A stretch of 64,000 nt of DNA from positions 186,001 to 250,000 of the IMG/VR virus record IMGVR_UViG_3300044213_000107; one strand, written 5' to 3'. Below the pieces are notes generated by a model that saw only the letters and a program-made list of their open reading frames with translations, did not search any database and had not been told where the DNA came from. Positions 25,170-36,014 of this stretch are shown here, piece by piece. A program made the translations under genes and the position numbers. Numbering within the stretch: the stretch's first letter is position 1; every line of letters starts with the position of its first letter.

Positions 25170-25330
25170 TCTTTGGCTCCATATACAGTGTTTTCTAATG
25201 CCTGAAATGTTGTCTCTACTTTCGTCATTGCATCAATAAGATTCTGTTTATCCTCTTCAGATATAGTTTCGGGTAAATCAAAATTTAAACTGTTTACTTT
25301 ATCTTTAAGTTTACTAAGTTGTTCAATCAT
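25166..25330 (-). CDS. small hypothetical protein (54 aa, not in the ORF track)
   Basis: MIEQLSKLKDKVNSLNFDLPETISEEDK...YGAKE*; ATGA overlaps at both ends. Confidence 0.65.
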   Translation of the reverse strand: MIEQLSKLKDKVNSLNFDLPETISEEDKQNLIDAMTKVETTFQALENTVYGAKE

Positions 25331-26034
25331 TTTTCTATCCTTTTAATTTGCCAGCCTTTACATTTTCCTCTTTTTGGTATACTGTTATTTTGTAACGCTT
25401 TTTCCATTGTTGATATAGTCAATTTGTTATCGTTACAGAACTTATAAAACTCACCTACTATTATATATTCTATTCCTCCTGGAGATATAAAAATATATGT
25501 TTTGCTATTATTTTTATTACCTTTCATTCTAATAGAATGTGCTTGTTTGTTTTTTACAGAATGATGTTTTCCGTAAAATGGATTTAATTTGCCGGACCTT
25601 GCTATTTTCCGTTTTGTTTCTTCAGAGTGCGGTTTACGACCAATAGTTTTACAAGTTTCTATATAGCTTTTTACTCTATTCGTAACATGAGTTGCACTTT
25701 GTTTCTTACCTTTCCAACTTGGTGGTCTGTTGTCTACACATATATTTGTTAATATGCCGCCTGGATCAATATTTTCTCTACCATATTTTTTAATAAAAGT
25801 AGTTTCTATAATATATGCTTCGTCCTCATCTACTATATTATCCACTAGAATATTGACAGGAATTTCATATCCTGCTTGCTTTAGATAGTTTATTTTAAAA
25901 ATTTTGTGTCTATTACTGGTATTTTCTATAGATTCATTAAAATGATCAAGATGTCTATTGTTTATCTTTAATCCTTTGCCTATATAAAACGGTAGGTTGG
26001 TTCTTATATCCATTAGAGCGTAAATGTAATACAT
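25327..26034 (-). mobile_element. free-standing GIY-YIG homing endonuclease with NUMOD3-like repeats
   Basis: YYIYAL...PFYIGKG...R..DH...E...IKKYGR...LTN; HSEETKRKI, NPFYGKHHS. Confidence 0.9.
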
Positions 26035-26083: not shown

Positions 26084-27157
26084 TCACTCCTCGATATTTT
26101 CTACTTGTTCTAATACGGGCTCGTCCCTATGTGGATGCTCTGTAATATCTTTCATTACTTGATCAAGGCATCCGTCTTCATTTCTTTCCCATGCTTTGCG
26201 GAATTTTTTAATCACAGTGCCATCAAATAAAGTGCATTTAAGACTATTACCATCTTTAGTTAGAATTCCTTTTCCTTCAAACAAATCAACAAGGCCCGAT
26301 GTTGGACTCATTCCTTGCTCATAAGGAATCTTAACCTGTACGCTTTCAAATGGTTTGGCATAGCGTGTCTTCATAATCTTACAAGCGGCGCGGATACCTT
26401 TAACTTCTGAGATCTTGTTGCCATCTTCGTCTTCTTTGAGTTTTAACTTACGCATAGCAACGACAATAGAGCTAGCATAGATAAAACCTTGACCGCCCGA
26501 GATTTTATCATCGGGGTCAAACATATCTTGGCTAGCGTACGTGTGATTAGTTGCAACTAAACCGATATTTAAAGCACCAATCATATTAACACAGTTACGA
26601 ACAAGTGCTGTTAATGCTTTAGGCTTACGACCTAAGTCGCCTTTTAAATCGCCTGCTTCAAATTGATTAACATCTGTAGGTGTTAACAACATACCTAGAC
26701 TGTCTAGTACAAACAATACTTTAGGACGAGATTCTTCAGGTAACGTTTTATATTCCTTAACAAACTCACTGATCATTTTAGCAACGTCATCAATCATTGC
26801 CATGTTAAGTTTAAGAAGTTTGTCTTCGCTGGTATCTACCCCAAGCGCATGCAACCATGCTTCATCAAGTGCGTTTTCTGTATCAATTAGAATAGGATAG
26901 ATACCTTGTGCCTGTGCGTTTTTAATTAAGTTGCCCGAACAGATAAACGATTTACCTGCGCCCGACTCGCCTGCAAATACAGTAACCTTGCCCATTGGTA
27001 TACCTTTGTAGAAGTCCCCGGAGATAAGATAGTTTAGTGCATAGTTGTTTGTTGATATCCAATCAGTGGGGTCATTAAATCCTACACTAATACCATCGAT
27101 ACTTTTTGTAATACTTTTTCTAAATTTGCTTACGTCAAATGGTTTTGCTATTGCCAT
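26084..27157 (-). CDS. uvsX: RecA-like recombinase UvsX
   Basis: AGESGAGKS Walker A, IDTENA, VLDSLG, NHTY, SGG.GF.YASS. Confidence 0.95.
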   Translation of the reverse strand: MAIAKPFDVSKFRKSITKSIDGISVGFNDPTDWISTNNYALNYLISGDFYKGIPMGKVTVFAGESGAGKSFICSGNLIKNAQAQGIYPILIDTENALDEAWLHALGVDTSEDKLLKLNMAMIDDVAKMISEFVKEYKTLPEESRPKVLFVLDSLGMLLTPTDVNQFEAGDLKGDLGRKPKALTALVRNCVNMIGALNIGLVATNHTYASQDMFDPDDKISGGQGFIYASSIVVAMRKLKLKEDEDGNKISEVKGIRAACKIMKTRYAKPFESVQVKIPYEQGMSPTSGLVDLFEGKGILTKDGNSLKCTLFDGTVIKKFRKAWERNEDGCLDQVMKDITEHPHRDEPVLEQVENIEE

Positions 27158-27933: not shown

Positions 27934-28947
27934 TTATTGTGTTTTACGATTTCTAATCATTGCCAAAATATCTTCGGCACGTTGACTTGATGGTTTTGCA
28001 GCCGGAGTTGCTACTGGTGCAGCAGCTTCTGCTGGTTCTTCATCTATGTCAAATGGAGCAGCTTCTGCAACTGGTGCTGGTATGGCTTTTGCTACAGGAG
28101 CAGGTGCGGCTTTTGCTGATGATTCGTTGTCATCTCCAGTACTGCCAGCACCACCTTGGAAGCCACTTGGCTTGTAGTAGTTGGCCCAACGATCTGGATC
28201 GTACGGTTGACCATCAACACTAGCCTCAAACATTTCCTTGATTACTTTCAATTCGACGTCCGTGGGTTGCTTTGGCAAAAAGTCGCTCAAATTAAACAAA
28301 CCATATTGTTCGACTGCAGCAGCTTCATCTGAGTTCAACGCAGACTCTTTGCGTGACCACTTGCTTGTTGAATAGTCTGCATAACCACCTTTGCTGGTTT
28401 TAGTGACCGTAAAGTCTAGTCCGGCTTCGTAGTCAGTTGGCAAGTTTTCCAACTCTGGGTCCATCAACGCAGATTTGATCAGATTAAAAATCTGTGGACT
28501 AATAACAAATCTACGAATAGGATTTGCTGGTGCACGATCATCAGTTAAAGAATTTTCACGTACAAAACCTTGGAACAAATAAGATTTTTTCTTCCAATAC
28601 TTACGACCCATTTCTTCTAAACCTGGGTCTTTGAACCATGTACGTACTTCTGCCAAGATTGGGCAGGCAGCTCCGTACATTTCTACACACGGAACTTGTA
28701 CAACAACTGGTTTTGAATCTGATTGACCTTTAATGCCAGCAAAAGGTAAACGAATCATTAGTCGTTCAACCCAGAAAAAGTCATTTTTTGTATTTCCGTC
28801 TGGTAAAAAGCGAATTCTACTGCTTGTGCCTTCGGGGATGTTCCAATGTGGATAAATTGCGTTATCACCTTGGGATTGTGAGTTACCGCCGGAGCGGTCT
28901 GCTTGTGCTTGTAATTTAGCGCGAATTTCTGCGAGAGATGTAGCCAT
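27934..28947 (-). CDS. gp32: single-stranded DNA-binding protein (T4 gp32 family)
   Basis: RIRFLP, CPI, YWKKKSYLFQG, DFTVTKT...GYADY..S, acidic tail. Confidence 0.92.
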   Translation of the reverse strand: MATSLAEIRAKLQAQADRSGGNSQSQGDNAIYPHWNIPEGTSSRIRFLPDGNTKNDFFWVERLMIRLPFAGIKGQSDSKPVVVQVPCVEMYGAACPILAEVRTWFKDPGLEEMGRKYWKKKSYLFQGFVRENSLTDDRAPANPIRRFVISPQIFNLIKSALMDPELENLPTDYEAGLDFTVTKTSKGGYADYSTSKWSRKESALNSDEAAAVEQYGLFNLSDFLPKQPTDVELKVIKEMFEASVDGQPYDPDRWANYYKPSGFQGGAGSTGDDNESSAKAAPAPVAKAIPAPVAEAAPFDIDEEPAEAAAPVATPAAKPSSQRAEDILAMIRNRKTQ

Positions 28948-29052: not shown

Positions 29053-30495
29053 TTATTTTTTACCCAGACCAGCTAGTGTTCGGATAAACGCCAAATCGTC
29101 AGATTCAGTAACAGGTTCATCCATTCCGGTTGCACCAACTGTGTTGTTCTGCGGCGTTGCAGGTTGCGCAGGTGGTTGTTGCGGAGTTTGATTTACTTGT
29201 GTAAGTTCAGCATAGATCTCATCAGCGAGATCAGTCATACCGTTTGACTTCATCCATGCCAATACTGTTTGGCGTGTGTCAACGTCTGGACCAAAATCAC
29301 TGCTTAATTTGGTTAGCGTACTTTCCATATCTGGATCTATATCGCTGAAGTAGAATTTTAATTCATTCCATGCATCCTGTCCATCTATACCGGCTGGCAA
29401 CGGATGCTTCATTAATTCTTTAAAGTCTTCTTGTTTGTATTCATCTTCAATGTTTTCTAACACCGAAGTTTCGTTAACCCAGGATTCAAATTCTTTGCCC
29501 ATTATTGGTTGAGAATCTTTGTATTTTTTATATGCACGATATACATATGGCAGTGCCGCATCAAATTTATCATTGTAGACTTTTTTAACAAATCGTTCAC
29601 GCAAACTAGGAATGTCAACGGAATCTTCTACTGCAGCGTCAGGGACAAAATTTTCTGCATAGTGGCGATAGCCTTTGGGCCCACCAATGTGACGTAGACG
29701 ATCGCGTAACTCACCATAGTGATGTATAGCTGCATGAGCCATTTGTTGTGTTTCTGTGTCTTCAAATTGGCGACGTTTTGCTTCACGCACAAAATGTGCC
29801 ATTGCCGACATTTCCATGCATATTCCACTTATGCTTTCACCAATTGCATCATCAACTGATCCACCATTGCTACAATGTTGCGCCATTGCACGAGCACCGT
29901 GTAGGTTTTTAAACGGCAATAGTCTGCGTTCGCCGACATGATTTTCAATAAACACACTGTCGATATTACGACTACGTGCACCACGTTTTTCATCATCTAC
30001 ATTGGCGCTATGGCGAACAATAATACGGGCAGGACCACATTCTTGATAACTGCTGCGACTTGTGCCCCACATACGACTTTCTGTAACTGCATCAACTTCG
30101 CCGGCGTCGAACGTACTGTCATGACGACTTTGTTGTTTTACATCGCGTAGTTCTAAATTGCCTTTTGTGTTGTCTCTTACATCAAATCGCATCATGTTAC
30201 TGCGAGCAAACTTTTTCATTGTAATCAAAAATTTATTCCATTCTGCGGTTTCTTCAGCGTCTAAGTGTTCACCGATGTTTTTACCAAATAAAATTTTTAA
30301 ACTTTCTTCATCAACAATACTAATAGTTACATTACCAAATTTCTTTCCATTCTGACCAATGTAATCAAAATTAAAGAAACGTGCACGTGCAGGATCACTG
30401 GTTGCTTGTGATTTTTCGTCGCCTAAACTGACGTTTTCAAAGCGACTACGGATTTTATTAAATAGTTCTGTAGCTACGTTTTCGCTGTTTATCAT
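29053..30495 (-). CDS. hypothetical, probably structural protein
   Basis: 480 aa, late promoter, located beside the terminase. Confidence 0.65.
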   Translation of the reverse strand: MINSENVATELFNKIRSRFENVSLGDEKSQATSDPARARFFNFDYIGQNGKKFGNVTISIVDEESLKILFGKNIGEHLDAEETAEWNKFLITMKKFARSNMMRFDVRDNTKGNLELRDVKQQSRHDSTFDAGEVDAVTESRMWGTSRSSYQECGPARIIVRHSANVDDEKRGARSRNIDSVFIENHVGERRLLPFKNLHGARAMAQHCSNGGSVDDAIGESISGICMEMSAMAHFVREAKRRQFEDTETQQMAHAAIHHYGELRDRLRHIGGPKGYRHYAENFVPDAAVEDSVDIPSLRERFVKKVYNDKFDAALPYVYRAYKKYKDSQPIMGKEFESWVNETSVLENIEDEYKQEDFKELMKHPLPAGIDGQDAWNELKFYFSDIDPDMESTLTKLSSDFGPDVDTRQTVLAWMKSNGMTDLADEIYAELTQVNQTPQQPPAQPATPQNNTVGATGMDEPVTESDDLAFIRTLAGLGKK

Positions 30496-30529
30496 AATTC
30501 ATGTCCAATATTAGTATATTTAGTGAAAT

Positions 30530-31624
30530 TTAAAATCCTGCGAGCATAACAAATGGCATTGGATCTATGAAATCTTCTAGGTCATTACGTACACTTTCGT
30601 CTAATTCGGCATCAAAAGTCTGCAATAATTGTATCATACGAACACACAATAACATACTCATAACTAAATCGTCAGTTTCGCCTATTTTTGCAGCAAAGCT
30701 AGTGCCGTGTGCTACAAAGTTTTTAAGTTCACTAATTAAATTATTACTTGCAATGTGCAGACGTTTGTTTTCAATTAATGCTTTTAACTTAGCACAAACT
30801 GATATCTTGGATTTATTTGAAGTGGTAAATCCTTTGCGATACACCCTTGATACACCCGCACGCTTAGGTTCACTTAAAAAGGTACCACGAATATTTTCTT
30901 CGCCCATTTCCGCAATGGTAACCAATGCTGCTTCCCCTAATGTATTATTTTCTACGCTGTAATAGATGTTATTTTCTGTGCCAATTATATCGTATATGTA
31001 TTGGCAAACTTCTTTCATTATACCTACTTGTTTTTGGATAGGAGTTTTATTGTGTTGCCATTCGGCTACCTGTTTCATTGATGGCAATTCAACCACTTGT
31101 AGTGCTGCGTAATCGCCACCGGTGCCCAGGCTAGGATCCAGGCCGACTGCATAAGTATATCCTTTTTCAGGTTTTTTATACCAGCGAACTTGCCCTTGTT
31201 TTTCAATTGGATCTATACCGGCCAGTTCTACTAGATGCAAAGGGTTAATAAGCGTCTCATCAAAAATAATGAATTCGCAATTTGATGACAGCACTCCGTT
31301 TGTGTAATATCTATGACCACCTTCAACCTCTACTAAGTCATATACTAACTGTGTTTTGCCCGTGTCCGTGACCCCAATGATCTTAATTTCTCCGTTCTTG
31401 GATAATACTATGTCCCCAACAGTAAGTTCGTTCAACGGAACTCTAGTAGTATCATCAATAAACAACTTATGGTTGTTGGTGCACTCTAACCAATAGTCCT
31501 GCTCAAACTCAACTCTGCATATTGGGCGAGTTCCCAGGCAACGTATTCCTACAAATGATTTATATCCATCAGGAGTCAAAACTTTATACCCGTGTATATT
31601 TTCTTTAAAAGTTACTTCTGCCAT
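30530..31624 (-). CDS. gp17: terminase large subunit C-terminal nuclease part, fused to a 115-aa C-intein (31280-31624)
   Basis: MAEVTF...CTNNHKL...VYDL.V...HRYYTNGVLSSN | CEFIIFDETLI; GLDPS.G.GGD, SVENN, DDLVMS. Confidence 0.92.
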   Translation of the reverse strand: MAEVTFKENIHGYKVLTPDGYKSFVGIRCLGTRPICRVEFEQDYWLECTNNHKLFIDDTTRVPLNELTVGDIVLSKNGEIKIIGVTDTGKTQLVYDLVEVEGGHRYYTNGVLSSNCEFIIFDETLINPLHLVELAGIDPIEKQGQVRWYKKPEKGYTYAVGLDPSLGTGGDYAALQVVELPSMKQVAEWQHNKTPIQKQVGIMKEVCQYIYDIIGTENNIYYSVENNTLGEAALVTIAEMGEENIRGTFLSEPKRAGVSRVYRKGFTTSNKSKISVCAKLKALIENKRLHIASNNLISELKNFVAHGTSFAAKIGETDDLVMSMLLCVRMIQLLQTFDAELDESVRNDLEDFIDPMPFVMLAGF

Positions 31625-32616
31625 GTTAGTATCTCGTAGTTATTTTTATCAGTAAACAGCCAAACCTCGTACTCAAATCCCTGTTGTAAAACGGAATCTT
31701 TTTTACGTACATTATTAGTTAATCGTGATTTGTATTTTTTATCTCCGTTACCGTCCCACCACCACCGACTTTTTACTTCAATTATTTTATTTTCTTTTGT
31801 AATCAATATATCTGGATAATATAAAGCTGTGTGTTGATTGACGTTTATATATTCAAACTTTGGTAGATCATAGACCGATTTCCTATCATCAAATTGTAGG
31901 TCGGATTCCTCATAAATTTCTAATAACTTAGTTATTGTTATATCTTCATACCCCCTAACACCAATTACACGCCCAGATGGAAGGACAAATTCTCTTCCTA
32001 AACTATTTGATTTTGCTGAATTTGTTCTTGCTTCAGGTTTCATTAATGCGTTCTCAACACCAAATTTTGTCAAACATGTTGCACGCCGTTTGTCGGCAAT
32101 TTCACTGATTTTTTCAGCTGACATTGCTTGCCAAGATGCACTTGTTTGTTTGCTATTAGCATAATATTCATCACCATAACGTTCAAATTTGGTTTTCTTA
32201 GATTTATGTTTGTATGTTGCAGATTGCGTTACCCATTCTACATCATATTTTTTTCTAAAAGTTTCTTTGGATTTTATAACTTGTGATTGTATTTGTTCTT
32301 GTGTTCTTGCACTGGCCGCTAATCTTTTATTATTAGAATCGGTATTCCTTTGTTCTATAGTCCAAGACCGTTTAGTATTGGATATGCTTAGTCCCACACA
32401 TTTAGGGTCACCGCAACTATTAGCATAGGTTTCTGTTTTTTGATAAAATGATAGGGCATTCCCGCATCTACATTTTGGGGATGTTTTGGTAATATATGTT
32501 TCAATATACTGTTGGTACGTTAGATTGTTATTTCTTAAATGCCTAGTAAATTGACCATTGGTTTTACAATAAGTTTTATGATCTATTACTGATGTTATAT
32601 ATTTTGTTTTAGACAT
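31612..32616 (-). mobile_element. free-standing endonuclease (PD-(D/E)xK-like) between the terminase halves
   Basis: N-terminal CxCG...CG...C; K..T..KKYG-type repeats; YYPDILI...KIIEVKS; start probably MSKTKY at 32616 (track 32646). Confidence 0.75.
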
Positions 32617-32648
32617 ACATTTCTCTGCTAAATCGTTCACGAGCAAGA

Positions 32649-33566
32649 TTATTTATCTAAAATATCAAACAATTCAGAAATTGTTAAGGTTCGTGCACTG
32701 TCATCGACTACAACATCTAATAGTGTATTACCGTTACAGCACTCCATTTCACGACGGAAGCGTTCTTCACCAAGTTGTGCTCGCATTTCTGCAGCCCATT
32801 TTTCATCACGATCTGGGTGTTCTCGCCAAGCACTACGGAATGCTTTAAATCCATTGATGCCTAGCTCAGTTTGGTTTCCAAACTCGTCAATGGTCTTATT
32901 AGCACCTTTCCAAATCTGTGCAAATTGATCTTCGTCTGAGTTTGGGGTACTAGTAATAATACACTTACCACCAGTTGATAGCGTAGGTGTAATCGACGTC
33001 CAGAATTCTTGTGCAATAGTCGGTCTTACGAAAGCAAACTCATCACAGTATAATAAGGATATACTCATACCACGACCGGTATTTTCTGTAGTCGTAGCAC
33101 TTACAATACGTGATCCATTTTCAAAGTCTAATGATCCCTTGTTATAACTTGTTACTCCTGCTCGTATATGATCTGGGCAATTTTCATATGCATATCGCAC
33201 ACGTTGCATAATTTCTTGTGCACCTGTATATTTGTGGGCTGCAACCAAAATAGTTGAATCGGGAACAAACATAGCATACCAAAGTAAATACCCTGCAGCA
33301 CTTGTAGATTTCCCCGTTTGTCTTGGCATTAGGCTAATAGAGAACCTATAATTGTGATAGCTATCTATTAGACGTTCTTGATACTCAAAAGGATGATATT
33401 GGATGGCTCCTTTTGTTGGGTGTTGTATAAAAAAGTAATTGTTCATGAAATATTGTGGACCAGTTACTGGGTCGGCACAATGAACAAATTCTGTAAATTG
33501 TTCTTTCGAAAGACTCATTTTTTTATAAGGAGTCTTTATGATAGATAGTTCGTTGGAATTACTCAT
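32649..33566 (-). CDS. gp17: terminase large subunit N-terminal ATPase part, ending in a 30-aa N-intein (32652-32741)
   Basis: PRQTGKS Walker A, LLYCDEFAF Walker B, TSTPN; FRREME | CCNGNTLLDVVVDDSARTLTISELFDILDK*. Confidence 0.93.
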   Translation of the reverse strand: MSNSNELSIIKTPYKKMSLSKEQFTEFVHCADPVTGPQYFMNNYFFIQHPTKGAIQYHPFEYQERLIDSYHNYRFSISLMPRQTGKSTSAAGYLLWYAMFVPDSTILVAAHKYTGAQEIMQRVRYAYENCPDHIRAGVTSYNKGSLDFENGSRIVSATTTENTGRGMSISLLYCDEFAFVRPTIAQEFWTSITPTLSTGGKCIITSTPNSDEDQFAQIWKGANKTIDEFGNQTELGINGFKAFRSAWREHPDRDEKWAAEMRAQLGEERFRREMECCNGNTLLDVVVDDSARTLTISELFDILDK

Positions 33567-33581
33567 GTTAAATATACTTAT

Positions 33582-34112
33582 ATGGAAACACTATTATTAA
33601 ATCGAGATTTGGCACCTATATCAATATTACCACTAAGTGTTATTGGTTGGCAACATGCTATAAAATTAATGTTTTTAGATCGCATTGAAGTACTTGAATC
33701 ATATGAAGATCGAGTAGTCCGTAGTGAAAAGTTGACCATTAATGTCCCTGCTGTGGCCATGACCAAAGAGTATTTTAACTATAAAAAAGGTGTAAAATTC
33801 AGTCGCCATAATTTGTATTTACGTGATTTGTATCAATGCCAGTATTGTGCAGACACATTTAATGTTAAAGATCTTACCATTGATCATGTTATACCTAGAG
33901 TAAGTGGTGGTGGCACTAATTGGGAAAATTGTGTTACTTCTTGTAGAACGTGCAATAGTCGCAAAGGCAGCAAATTACAAAAGCCATTGCGTATGCCGTT
34001 TAAGCCTAGTTACTATAAATTGATACAAACATGGAAAGATCGTCATTTTCATGTTAACCATCCAAGTTGGTATCGTTATTTAGGTGTAGAAGAAAAACAG
34101 GCCAACACTTAA
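33582..34112 (+). CDS. HNH endonuclease (McrA/HNH_5-like)
   Basis: LRDLYQCQYC...TIDHVIPR..GG...WENCVTSCRTCN..K. Confidence 0.92.
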   Translation: METLLLNRDLAPISILPLSVIGWQHAIKLMFLDRIEVLESYEDRVVRSEKLTINVPAVAMTKEYFNYKKGVKFSRHNLYLRDLYQCQYCADTFNVKDLTIDHVIPRVSGGGTNWENCVTSCRTCNSRKGSKLQKPLRMPFKPSYYKLIQTWKDRHFHVNHPSWYRYLGVEEKQANT

Positions 34113-34465
34113 TCGTTGGTTGGTTTTTCGCCGGTTAGATATGGCTTGCTAAACCAAAGTTGAAACCATTCATCTGTGCCCGGACAAATGTCTTTGTCGT
34201 GCTCGATCTTGCGTTTTTCCATTGCAGTCTTGCTGATATTAGCACCTTCGCCTTTGGCAAAGTCTGTATGACTAAAATCAGATTGTGTGTTACTGCCTAC
34301 AGGACTATTAACATTAACTGGATCAGGTCGTTGATATTCTGTTAGCAAAGATAGTCCTGCCAGTCTACGTATATCGTTTATTTCTGTGATATCCATTACT
34401 GCATCGGGTACTGTTGAATCCCCGGCCGGAACATAATCTGTACTAGTAAAACGATACTGTTTCAT
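34109..34465 (-). CDS. hypothetical protein
   Basis: 118 aa, coupled ORF. Confidence 0.65.
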   Translation of the reverse strand: MKQYRFTSTDYVPAGDSTVPDAVMDITEINDIRRLAGLSLLTEYQRPDPVNVNSPVGSNTQSDFSHTDFAKGEGANISKTAMEKRKIEHDKDICPGTDEWFQLWFSKPYLTGEKPTND

Positions 34466-34839
34466 TAGACACCGTGTTTGTTTTTCTTACGTGCAGCAAC
34501 TGGACTGGTACGATGCACTTCATCTGCTTCAGTGCTATTATTTGGTGTTAACCTTTTGCTCTTAGCTCCAAATGCACGTTCTGCTTGATCTAATATTTTG
34601 TGTTCGCCATCAGAATAAGCAACTGTAACAAGGGCCTGCCCATTGGGGCCTTCTTTGTCAGGTTCGTGCTCATACTTACCACTGGGATCTCCTGCGCCAC
34701 CTAAAAAGTGTGCAGCAAAACGCCAAGGAGCATAAGGACTAGAGTTATCCAAATTTGGATGGGTCTTCATACCAGGAGTTGCAGCAGTATGCGACTTTGG
34801 TAATTGACTAGTTTCTGTGATGATCTCAGTTATTTTCAT
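34465..34839 (-). CDS. hypothetical, probable internal head protein
   Basis: MKITEIITE N-terminus, late promoter. Confidence 0.6.
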   Translation of the reverse strand: MKITEIITETSQLPKSHTAATPGMKTHPNLDNSSPYAPWRFAAHFLGGAGDPSGKYEHEPDKEGPNGQALVTVAYSDGEHKILDQAERAFGAKSKRLTPNNSTEADEVHRTSPVAARKKNKHGV

Positions 34840-34841
34840 AG

Positions 34842-36014
34842 TCAAGTATTTATCAGTAGTTGGTAGAACTCAGGGTGTGTGTCTGCATATGAAGTGTCTG
34901 TTGCGGCATCATATTTTTTAACATAAGATAAAAAATCAGCAGAACTAAAATTTTCATCTACAATAATGTAATCTGCCAAAAAATCCAGTTCTTTAATACC
35001 GGCAGTTTTATCTAATATGGCAGTTCTAAGACTAGAACTCACTTCTTGTGCCGAGCACTTTCCGAGTCCGGTGTTAAAAGGTGTAAAGTTTTTATAGACA
35101 GCAGGGAATTCTGTAGATAAAAAATTACACAATTCTGAAATGTAAAATATATTATACAGGCTGTAGGTTATGTTAAAACATAATTCTACTCTAGGTCCAC
35201 AATTGGCTTGGAACCATTTAATATTTTCTACTACTTGATCCCATTTTGCGCCACGGCGTTGATATTCAAATCTTTTGCCGATGTCATCTATACTAAAAAA
35301 TAATCTAACTTTTTCAACAGAATTTAATATTTCTAAAAATTCCGGAGTCGGCAAGGTTGTGGCATTTGTAAATATCCAAATAGTTAGATCATCGTAGCTG
35401 CGATATTTTCCCATGTTTCGAAAAAATTCATAGTATGCCGGTTCCATAAATATTTCGCCGCCTTGCAGTTGTACCAATTTAAGACTTTTAAATAATGCAG
35501 GATCATCAATTACAGGACGGTCATTCTTTTTATATTTCATTCCAGGCCAAATAAATCCCCAGTGTTTTTCGTACAAAGGAATCCAACTACTGCTGTTAAA
35601 AGGACCACATATAGCACAACTTAGATTACAAAGGTTTCCTAGATTTAAATCAATCCTTGTTAAAACTTCTACTTCACTAGTGCCGTGCTCTCTAATAGCA
35701 TGATATCTTCCACTGGCGTGAGGATTTATTTGATCTTGCTGATAACAATGGCCGCAACCAGGATGCTTTTCGTTATTTTTATTTTTTTCTCGTAGCTCAA
35801 CAATAAATGGTGCAGAATTATAATCATTGTAAATTTCATTGCTGCGAGAAATAAACATATCCTCACCTTTAGGCTTATAATCCCTATTAAAATAACAACA
35901 GGGTTTATAATCAAAGCGATCGTTCAGTTGATTTATGTATGCTCTATTCCATATCTCAGGGCAATAGACATCAGGATCTACATCGGTGTGATGTATCTTT
36001 ATTGGATATTCCAT
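34842..36014 (-). CDS. radical SAM protein with SPASM/twitch-type cluster
   Basis: CNLSCAIC, QGGE, KPCC...CGHC. Confidence 0.88.
   Translation of the reverse strand: MEYPIKIHHTDVDPDVYCPEIWNRAYINQLNDRFDYKPCCYFNRDYKPKGEDMFISRSNEIYNDYNSAPFIVELREKNKNNEKHPGCGHCYQQDQINPHASGRYHAIREHGTSEVEVLTRIDLNLGNLCNLSCAICGPFNSSSWIPLYEKHWGFIWPGMKYKKNDRPVIDDPALFKSLKLVQLQGGEIFMEPAYYEFFRNMGKYRSYDDLTIWIFTNATTLPTPEFLEILNSVEKVRLFFSIDDIGKRFEYQRRGAKWDQVVENIKWFQANCGPRVELCFNITYSLYNIFYISELCNFLSTEFPAVYKNFTPFNTGLGKCSAQEVSSSLRTAILDKTAGIKELDFLADYIIVDENFSSADFLSYVKKYDAATDTSYADTHPEFYQLLINT

Follow-up and report, generated by a model that had tools for sequence, protein, structure and literature searches.

A terL gene fractured by an atypically split intein and a free-standing DUF7487 endonuclease gene in a relative of PA5oct-like jumbo phages

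How does a phage obtain its DNA-packaging motor when the gene of the large terminase subunit (terL) is divided into two halves that are separated by a nuclease gene? This question is raised by positions 30530-33566 (minus strand) of a 64-kb stretch of DNA, here called the window, that lies in the 260.7-kb IMG/VR contig UViG_3300044213_000107. The TerL similarity puts the phage near the PA5oct-like jumbo phages. The locus consists of three open reading frames (ORFs), each in its own frame, and read-through is therefore unable to fuse them. The first ORF (33566..32649, 305 aa) has the C-terminus FRREME-CCNGNTLLDVVVDDSARTLTISELFDILDK followed by a stop codon, the second (32616..31612) encodes 334 aa counted from its ATG, and the third (31624..30530, 364 aa) has the N-terminus MAEVTFKEN and contains ECTNNH, VYDLVEV, and SSN/CEFIIFDE (the slash marks the insertion site here and below). 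It is very probable that terL was fractured by a class-1 mini-intein that was itself broken by a free-standing homing endonuclease gene (HEG), that the two TerL halves are joined by trans-splicing, and that the endonuclease homes. An earlier note, made from the letters of the window, had described an atypical split into an N-terminal intein fragment (IntN) of 30 aa and a C-terminal fragment (IntC) of 115 aa, with block B CTNNH, block F VYDL.V, and an SSN/C junction. Both lengths were read again from the ORFs and the three motifs are present in the third ORF.

The terminase halves and their junction

The N-half is the TerL ATPase (Pfam Terminase_6N, E 1.5e-16; phrog_36964, E 2.5e-66) and the C-half is the TerL nuclease (Pfam Terminase_6C, E 9.6e-9; phrog_36964, E 2.9e-55), the phrog_36964 profile positions being continuous over both halves (434-629, then 626-875). 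The C-extein also matches the RB49 and T4 gp17 nuclease domains in the PDB. Pseudomonas phage PA5oct has an uninterrupted TerL of 531 aa (L001), to which residues 9-276 of the N-half align at positions 16-283 with 60% identity and residues 116-360 of the C-half align at positions 283-531 with 49% identity. Val283 of PA5oct aligns with both the first Cys after FRREME and Cys116 of the C-half. In an intein-less relative from IMG/VR (L003), the C-extein of which is 88% identical, the gene reads GEERFRREMD/CEFIIFDETLINPLH and the Cys of the protein junction REMD/CEF, C276 of L003, is native. The window exteins correspond to nucleotides 1-824 and 826-1575 of the L003 terL, and an intein-less allele of this type has GAAATGGAT/TGCGAATTC at the insertion site. 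Relative to PA5oct and L003 no extein residue is missing and none is duplicated. Since the exteins abut exactly, the first Cys of the Cys-Cys pair is intein residue 1 and Cys+1 is a native host residue; the restoration of FRREME-CEFIIFDE that the earlier note had foreseen holds to the residue. Spliced TerL would be a protein of 524 aa with the junction peptide EME-CEFIIFDETLINPLHLVELAGIDPIEK.

Alignment to the T4 gp17 structures places the insertion site just before the nuclease domain, and thus the fracture parts the two functional domains of TerL. DNA identity between the window and L003 is ~80% across terL and 85-90% beside the junction, and no foreign tract indicative of co-conversion is visible in this comparison.

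The state of the two halves bears on the possibility that the terL locus is decaying and non-functional, while a different terminase, with its gene at another place in the genome, does the packaging. The terL search covered 64 kb of the ~260-kb contig, and related loci show HEG decay in the form of frameshifts and 5' deletions, both of which would be in keeping with this explanation. However, neither half is truncated and profile coverage runs on without a gap, the HEG and the intein are undamaged and have kept every invariant residue, and no second terL-like sequence was found within the 64-kb window. Selection is implied by the persistence of this architecture in many lineages of phages, and we consider decay very improbable.

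The position of the insert also bears on its removal at the RNA level by a group I or group II intron or some other RNA rearrangement, the case that the earlier note had set against trans-splicing. Introns are known to invade the terL genes of phages. When 29500-34500 was searched against Rfam at E <= 1 with permissive filters, no family matched and no intron-like RNA was seen; the 1.46-kb insert has in-frame Hint motifs at its ends, exactly at the extein junction, which an intron would leave unexplained. We give RNA-level removal almost no credence.

The split intein and its known relatives

In PDB searches IntC matched CatC, the 'consensus atypical' split intein (6dsl_B; E 6.2e-10 over residues 5-117), and VidaL (6vgv; E 1.7e-5). 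The natural split falls after block A, and the residues needed for splicing were found on its two sides. The N-terminal nucleophile is Cys276 of the N-half, directly at the junction with an N-extein ending in E275, and IntC has T49-N-N-H52 in block B, the block F Asp (VYD96LVEV), and a terminal Asn followed by Cys+1 (S114-N115/C116). L16, T17, P18, G20, F24, G26, H52, D96, N115, and C116 are invariant in 30 diverged IntC homologs, in which position 49 is either Thr or Ser.

IntN corresponds in alignment to the N-terminal ~30 residues of contiguous mini-inteins that occupy the same site in TerL, and the IntN and IntC of the window tile end to end on three of these (P0016 214-354, L141, and L159), with the split point in a loop that varies in length among the contiguous forms. 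An alignment-based structure prediction of the contiguous homolog P0016 (206-362) had a predicted local distance difference test score (pLDDT) of 91.9 and a predicted template modeling score (pTM) of 0.85, and its best PDB matches (Foldseek, E 2e-9) were the Ssp DnaB mini-intein, VidaL, gp41-1, Npu DnaB, and Cat. A HINT fold is thus predicted, for IntC by its sequence matches and as a model for the contiguous homolog P0016. The 39 distinct homologous IntN sequences are 25-39 aa long with a mode of 30-31. They begin with Cys in 34 cases and with Ser in 5, and their second residue is Cys in 16 of the 39. The latter include all five Ser1 (SC) alleles (L138, L144, L153, L161, and L132) and 11 of those with Cys1, which begin with CC as does the window IntN; the CC start is thus not peculiar to this allele.

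The penultimate residue of IntC, usually His, is Ser114. The earlier note had read this as a property of the allele; the Ser is real, but it is found at 34 of the 35 matching N/CxF junctions among P0001-P0041 and is therefore a trait of the clade, more distant clades having His, Lys, or Cys. Being clade-wide, the Ser is presumably tolerated. Inteins that lack the penultimate His can still splice.

We infer the chemistry of splicing, the dependence of packaging upon it, and the cleavage target of the endonuclease from the sequence together with predicted folds and published homologs. In the proposed scheme the mini-intein sits at the ATPase/nuclease boundary of TerL and the HEG interrupts it after its first ~30 residues, such that three polypeptides would be made: TerL(1-275)-IntN(30), the 334-aa DUF7487 endonuclease, and IntC(115)-TerL(276-524). 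The short acidic IntN would dock in the near-complete IntC and complete the HINT fold. Cys1 would then form the thioester, the N-extein would be transferred to Cys+1, and Asn115 would cyclize with Ser114 at the place of the usual penultimate His. A final S-to-N shift would give the native E275-C276 bond and a packaging-competent TerL.

The intein pieces might instead serve as a non-covalent dimerization module, giving a two-chain TerL in which no peptide bond is formed. A precedent is the HEG-fractured NrdA of phage Aeh1, the fragments of which are reportedly brought together by mobile-element-derived domains (PMC3045599), and the missing penultimate His could be read in the same way. However, Cys1, the Thr and His of block B, the Asp of block F, the terminal Asn, and Cys+1 are kept across dozens of diverged alleles, although mere association would not need splicing residues. 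The retention of this catalytic set (C1, T49/H52, D96, N115, and C+1) in 30-40 diverged alleles argues for splicing rather than mere association, and homologous TerL inteins splice in vitro. Non-covalent assembly is therefore improbable.

As the earlier note stated, the class to which this trans-splicing intein would belong is already known. AceL-TerL (IntN/IntC 25/104 aa), GOS-TerL (37/115 aa), and Cat (30/104 aa) trans-splice in vitro (review, PMC11766414). The window intein shares with these a short IntN, a long IntC (104-115 aa), Cys+1, and a C-extein beginning with CE, but differs in having Ser for the penultimate His and Cys-Cys at positions 1-2. CatC is 34% identical to the contiguous homolog P0016, a value from the fold search that does not refer to the window IntC. 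The CatC chain ends in SHA-CE, which, as far as the CE start of Cat goes, is compatible with the N/CEF site. VidaL shares the HINT fold and ranks second among the structural matches of the contiguous homolog (TM score 0.74-0.80), although it is more distant in sequence (24% identity).

The gene order N-extein-IntN, short spacer, free-standing endonuclease, and IntC-C-extein on one strand is shared with the fractured genes that Dassa et al. described (2009, NAR 37:2560, PMC2677866), in which the spacers are 27-51 nucleotides. One of these, the GOS Lake Gatun terminase locus, has an unusual break point and a C fragment of 122 aa, and resembles the window locus in its gp17-like terminase host and in an N fragment left with block N1 only; the 122-aa fragment is likened to the 115-aa IntC by its published description. 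In contrast to the Dassa et al. loci, in which the endonucleases are GIY-YIG or Vsr-like, the endonuclease here is a DUF7487 protein with a canonical ExK core and the host is one of the PA5oct-like jumbo phages.

The DUF7487 endonuclease

The earlier note had placed a free-standing endonuclease of about 335 aa between the halves, overlapping the IntC start by 13 nucleotides, and had ascribed to it a PD-(D/E)xK-like nuclease and KKYG-type repeats. These features are present: the protein has 334 aa, the overlap (ATGGCAGAAGTAA) is there, and the sequence contains an E/D/ExK core and three K[YF]G repeats. A mechanical ORF list gave 344 aa from a TTG start 10 codons upstream, but the homologs begin at the ATG. 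The overlapping stop and start are also found in the homologous loci L162, L164, and L166. The protein matches Pfam DUF7487 (PF24308; E 6e-31, profile positions 18-211 of 220), a family without assigned function the name of which was not found in a literature search. A 5.8-billion-protein collection held 254 homologous clusters, and the best 120 of the 254 are all 316-360 aa long, at least 50% identical, and carry DUF7487. Within the window this HEG is the only copy.

The AlphaFold2 model of the endonuclease (pLDDT 93.4, pTM 0.58) has three modules, the conservation of which was read from an alignment of 75 homologs. The first module is a small N-terminal beta region bearing a Cys cluster, in which C49, C51, C68, and C73 are invariant and C17 and H26 nearly so; Atlas clusters of homologs bear the name 'endonuclease fused to N-terminal Zn finger'. 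The second is all-helical and carries three K[YF]G-x-E repeats, KKYDVEW, ERYGDEY, and TKFGVEN (consensus KYGVEW, ERYGNE, and ERYGVEN), with Y124, G148, and G186 invariant. The third is a C-terminal alpha/beta domain that contains E224, YYPD269, and E280-V-K282, the four charged residues (E224, D269, E280, and K282) being invariant or nearly so. VIA-align matched the C-terminal domain to Vsr (1cw0, Z 7.9), TnsA (Z 7.7), I-Bth0305I (3r3p, Z 6.5), and Hjc (Z 5.9), with restriction-endonuclease-like matches of Z 5.5-7.9 over residues ~190-334. As these Z values are moderate, the E/D/ExK motif bears most of the weight of the assignment. The motif E...D...(D/E)xK on a modeled alpha/beta core places the HEG product in the PD-(D/E)xK superfamily. 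The protein had no match in the PDB by sequence, and Foldseek of the whole three-domain model gave weak matches (E >= 0.008) to the influenza PA and RecE nucleases.

Phage HEGs of the EDxHD family, such as I-Bth0305I, are likewise free-standing or intron-borne, and join a restriction-endonuclease-like core to distinct DNA-binding modules at the N-terminus. The family is defined by the residues E, D, H, and D, the His being catalytic, and lacks the Lys (PMC3239194). Membership in this Vsr-like family was rejected, the nuclease domain of the window protein having no conserved His and an invariant Lys282, and Pfam gave no Vsr or DUF559 match at E <= 1. A further difference is that in the window protein a Cys-cluster finger and KYG helices take the place of NUMOD or helix-turn-helix modules. 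The ~335-aa DUF7487 proteins may be a lineage distinct from the EDxHD/Vsr-like and I-Ssp6803I types.

Gene context suggests that DUF7487 proteins are the homing endonucleases of terL split inteins. The protein would bind DNA through the three K[YF]G helices and would also carry the Cys-cluster finger and the E224/D269/E280-x-K282 core; it would cut the element-free terL of co-infecting relatives, and recombinational repair would then copy in the intein-HEG cassette. That the endonuclease homes is supported indirectly by its position in a mobile intein, the patchy distribution of the element, and the series of decayed copies in relatives.

Distribution, mobility, and meaning

IMG/VR contains 301 IntC-like stretches and 41 protein clusters share IntC, numbers that are far beyond chance. 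We fetched 80 of the 301 stretches for inspection of their loci, and in nearly all of these IntC opens an ORF. The middle gene is a full-length DUF7487 HEG in 29 loci (gap ~1.0 kb), a frameshifted one in L096, L097, and L099, and one cut down to its 3' part in L087-89, L110, and L111. It is absent (gap ~0-60 nucleotides) from L006/7, L090-93, L100, L112/113, L157, and others. Other loci have a different gene at this place: HNH in L009, L140, and L149, a probable GIY-YIG in L067 and L071 (by motif only, with no Pfam match), and a weakly DUF559-like gene in L132 and L139. Three HEG homologs of ~50% identity from other collections all lie in the same terL arrangement, and one of them occurs in 95 blocks of its collection.

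The decayed DUF7487 genes (L087-L089, L110, L111, and L096-L099) either keep a 3' part that overlaps the IntC start (profile positions 205-333, 246-333, or 287-333) or carry a frameshift near position 284, a pattern suggestive of the HEG 3' end being retained for expression of the IntC half. It is possible, although we hold it doubtful, that both the ~335-aa DUF7487 proteins form their own HEG lineage specialized on the jumbo-phage terL split-intein site and the 3' end of the HEG is the translation-initiation region of IntC-TerL.

A tree of 127 TerL C-exteins was built by a quick search from rows that were not identical and from loci with C-extein matches longer than 220 residues. Intein presence on this tree needs 15 changes, at least 10 of which are forced by well-supported branches. 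The window pairs with the intein-less L003 (Shimodaira-Hasegawa approximate likelihood ratio test 99) within a mostly intein-less clade, and the alleles nearest to it are more alike in IntC (70-73% identity) than in the C-extein (53-63%). The patchy tree and the contrast in identities fit horizontal spread (homing) with occasional loss, gain events not being singled out.

Several relatives have further interruptions. A second atypical split site lies at the Walker B motif of TerL (N/CDE[FM]AF) in P0036, P0038-P0041, the N-terminus of P0016, L147, and L152. P0036 (260 aa) has an IntC at its start and an IntN at its end, and hence some phages appear to have a TerL in three pieces that two split inteins would join. 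Several inteins are present in P0035. In L162/L163 the terL part upstream of the DUF7487 HEG is broken further, into a 537-aa product with LAGLIDADG_3 followed by products of 312 and 242 aa, which indicates further intein or HEG insertions in terL.

Several points weigh against fracture by a homing, trans-splicing intein. Ser114 replaces the usual penultimate His, the first KYG repeat carries Asp at a position that is Gly in at least 90% of the homologs, and the terL search had the scope given above (64 kb of the 260-kb genome). The 30-aa IntN alone had no PDB sequence match, which is attributable to its shortness. Upstream of the IntC half there is no clear Shine-Dalgarno sequence; on inspection, leaders in this phage are AT-rich and Shine-Dalgarno sequences weak or absent. 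A promoter and terminator scan gave counts equal to the shuffled expectation, and a weak promoter-like match at 32687..32659 was no better than chance.

Table 1. Features of the fractured terL locus, followed by neighboring genes (window coordinates)
Feature	Position	Strand	Basis
terL N-extein, ATPase domain, codons 1-275, ending GEERFRREME	32742..33566	-	Pfam, PHROG, PA5oct and L003 alignments
IntN, 30 aa (CCNGNTLLDVVVDDSARTLTISELFDILDK)	32652..32741	-	Stop TAA at 32649-32651; translation; extein alignments; contiguous mini-inteins
Spacer of 32 nucleotides, IntN stop to endonuclease ATG	32617..32648	-	Sequence
Candidate free-standing homing endonuclease gene, 334 aa plus stop, Pfam DUF7487	31612..32616	-	PF24308, E 6e-31
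HEG Cys-cluster (zinc-finger-like) region, residues 1-75	32392..32616	-	Conservation in 75 homologs
HEG helical region, three K[YF]G-x-E repeats, residues ~116-195, presumed DNA-binding	32032..32271	-	Consensus, model
HEG PD-(D/E)xK nuclease domain, residues 207-334	31615..31998	-	E224, D269, E280, K282; VIA-align
Overlap of 13 nucleotides, HEG stop and IntC start (ATGGCAGAAGTAA)	31612..31624	-	Sequence
IntC, 115 aa	31280..31624	-	VLTPDG strand, block B T49..H52, block F D96, S114-N115; CatC and VidaL matches
Cys+1 codon, C-extein residue 1	31277..31279	-	Aligned with PA5oct V283 and the native Cys of L003
terL C-extein, RNase H-like nuclease domain, 249 aa plus stop	30530..31279	-	Pfam, PHROG, PDB, PA5oct
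HNH endonuclease gene	33582..34112	+	HNH_5, E 2e-17; phrog_16726
Radical-SAM protein gene	34842..36014	-	E 1.2e-6, just below the Pfam cut-off
gp32-like single-stranded DNA-binding protein gene	27934..28947	-	phrog_1192, E 1e-70
RecA/UvsX-like recombinase gene	26084..27157	-	
Free-standing GIY-YIG/NUMOD3 endonuclease gene	25327..26034	-	LEM-3_GIY-YIG, E 2.8e-7; NUMOD3, E 5e-8

The packaging genes are flanked by the radical-SAM and gp32-like genes, and related loci have the same gene order (terL, structural protein, single-stranded DNA-binding protein, UvsX-like). The HNH gene is divergent from the terL N-half and starts 16 nucleotides upstream of its start; it could be a terminase-associated HNH gene or another mobile nuclease. 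The GIY-YIG/NUMOD3 gene, directly upstream of which lies the recombinase gene, is likely a second homing endonuclease gene of the window.

With 301 IntC-like stretches and 254 HEG clusters, the arrangement abounds in metagenomic phages. Its class was known by 2009 and has been put to use since 2014; current concepts are unchanged by this locus, which is a further, well-preserved, and apparently functional case from a jumbo phage. The locus adds one more natural intein with a short IntN (30 aa) to the AceL/GOS/Cat series, with a Cys-Cys start and a penultimate Ser as its traits, and may serve in semisynthetic protein labeling. Less trodden are the uncharacterized DUF7487 family, an abundant group of putative endonucleases with a modular, presumed DNA-binding region, and the 3' end of its gene that is always kept in decayed copies. 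Across the related loci one site displays an unusually complete life cycle of a selfish element: empty, occupied by a contiguous mini-intein, split with an intact HEG (of several families), split with a frameshifted or 5'-deleted HEG, and split without a HEG. If the 3' end of the HEG is the initiation region of IntC-TerL, a host gene would have become dependent on a piece of its parasite, and should splicing be required, the packaging motor of this phage lineage could be assembled only by way of a post-translational ligation at the ATPase-nuclease boundary of TerL.

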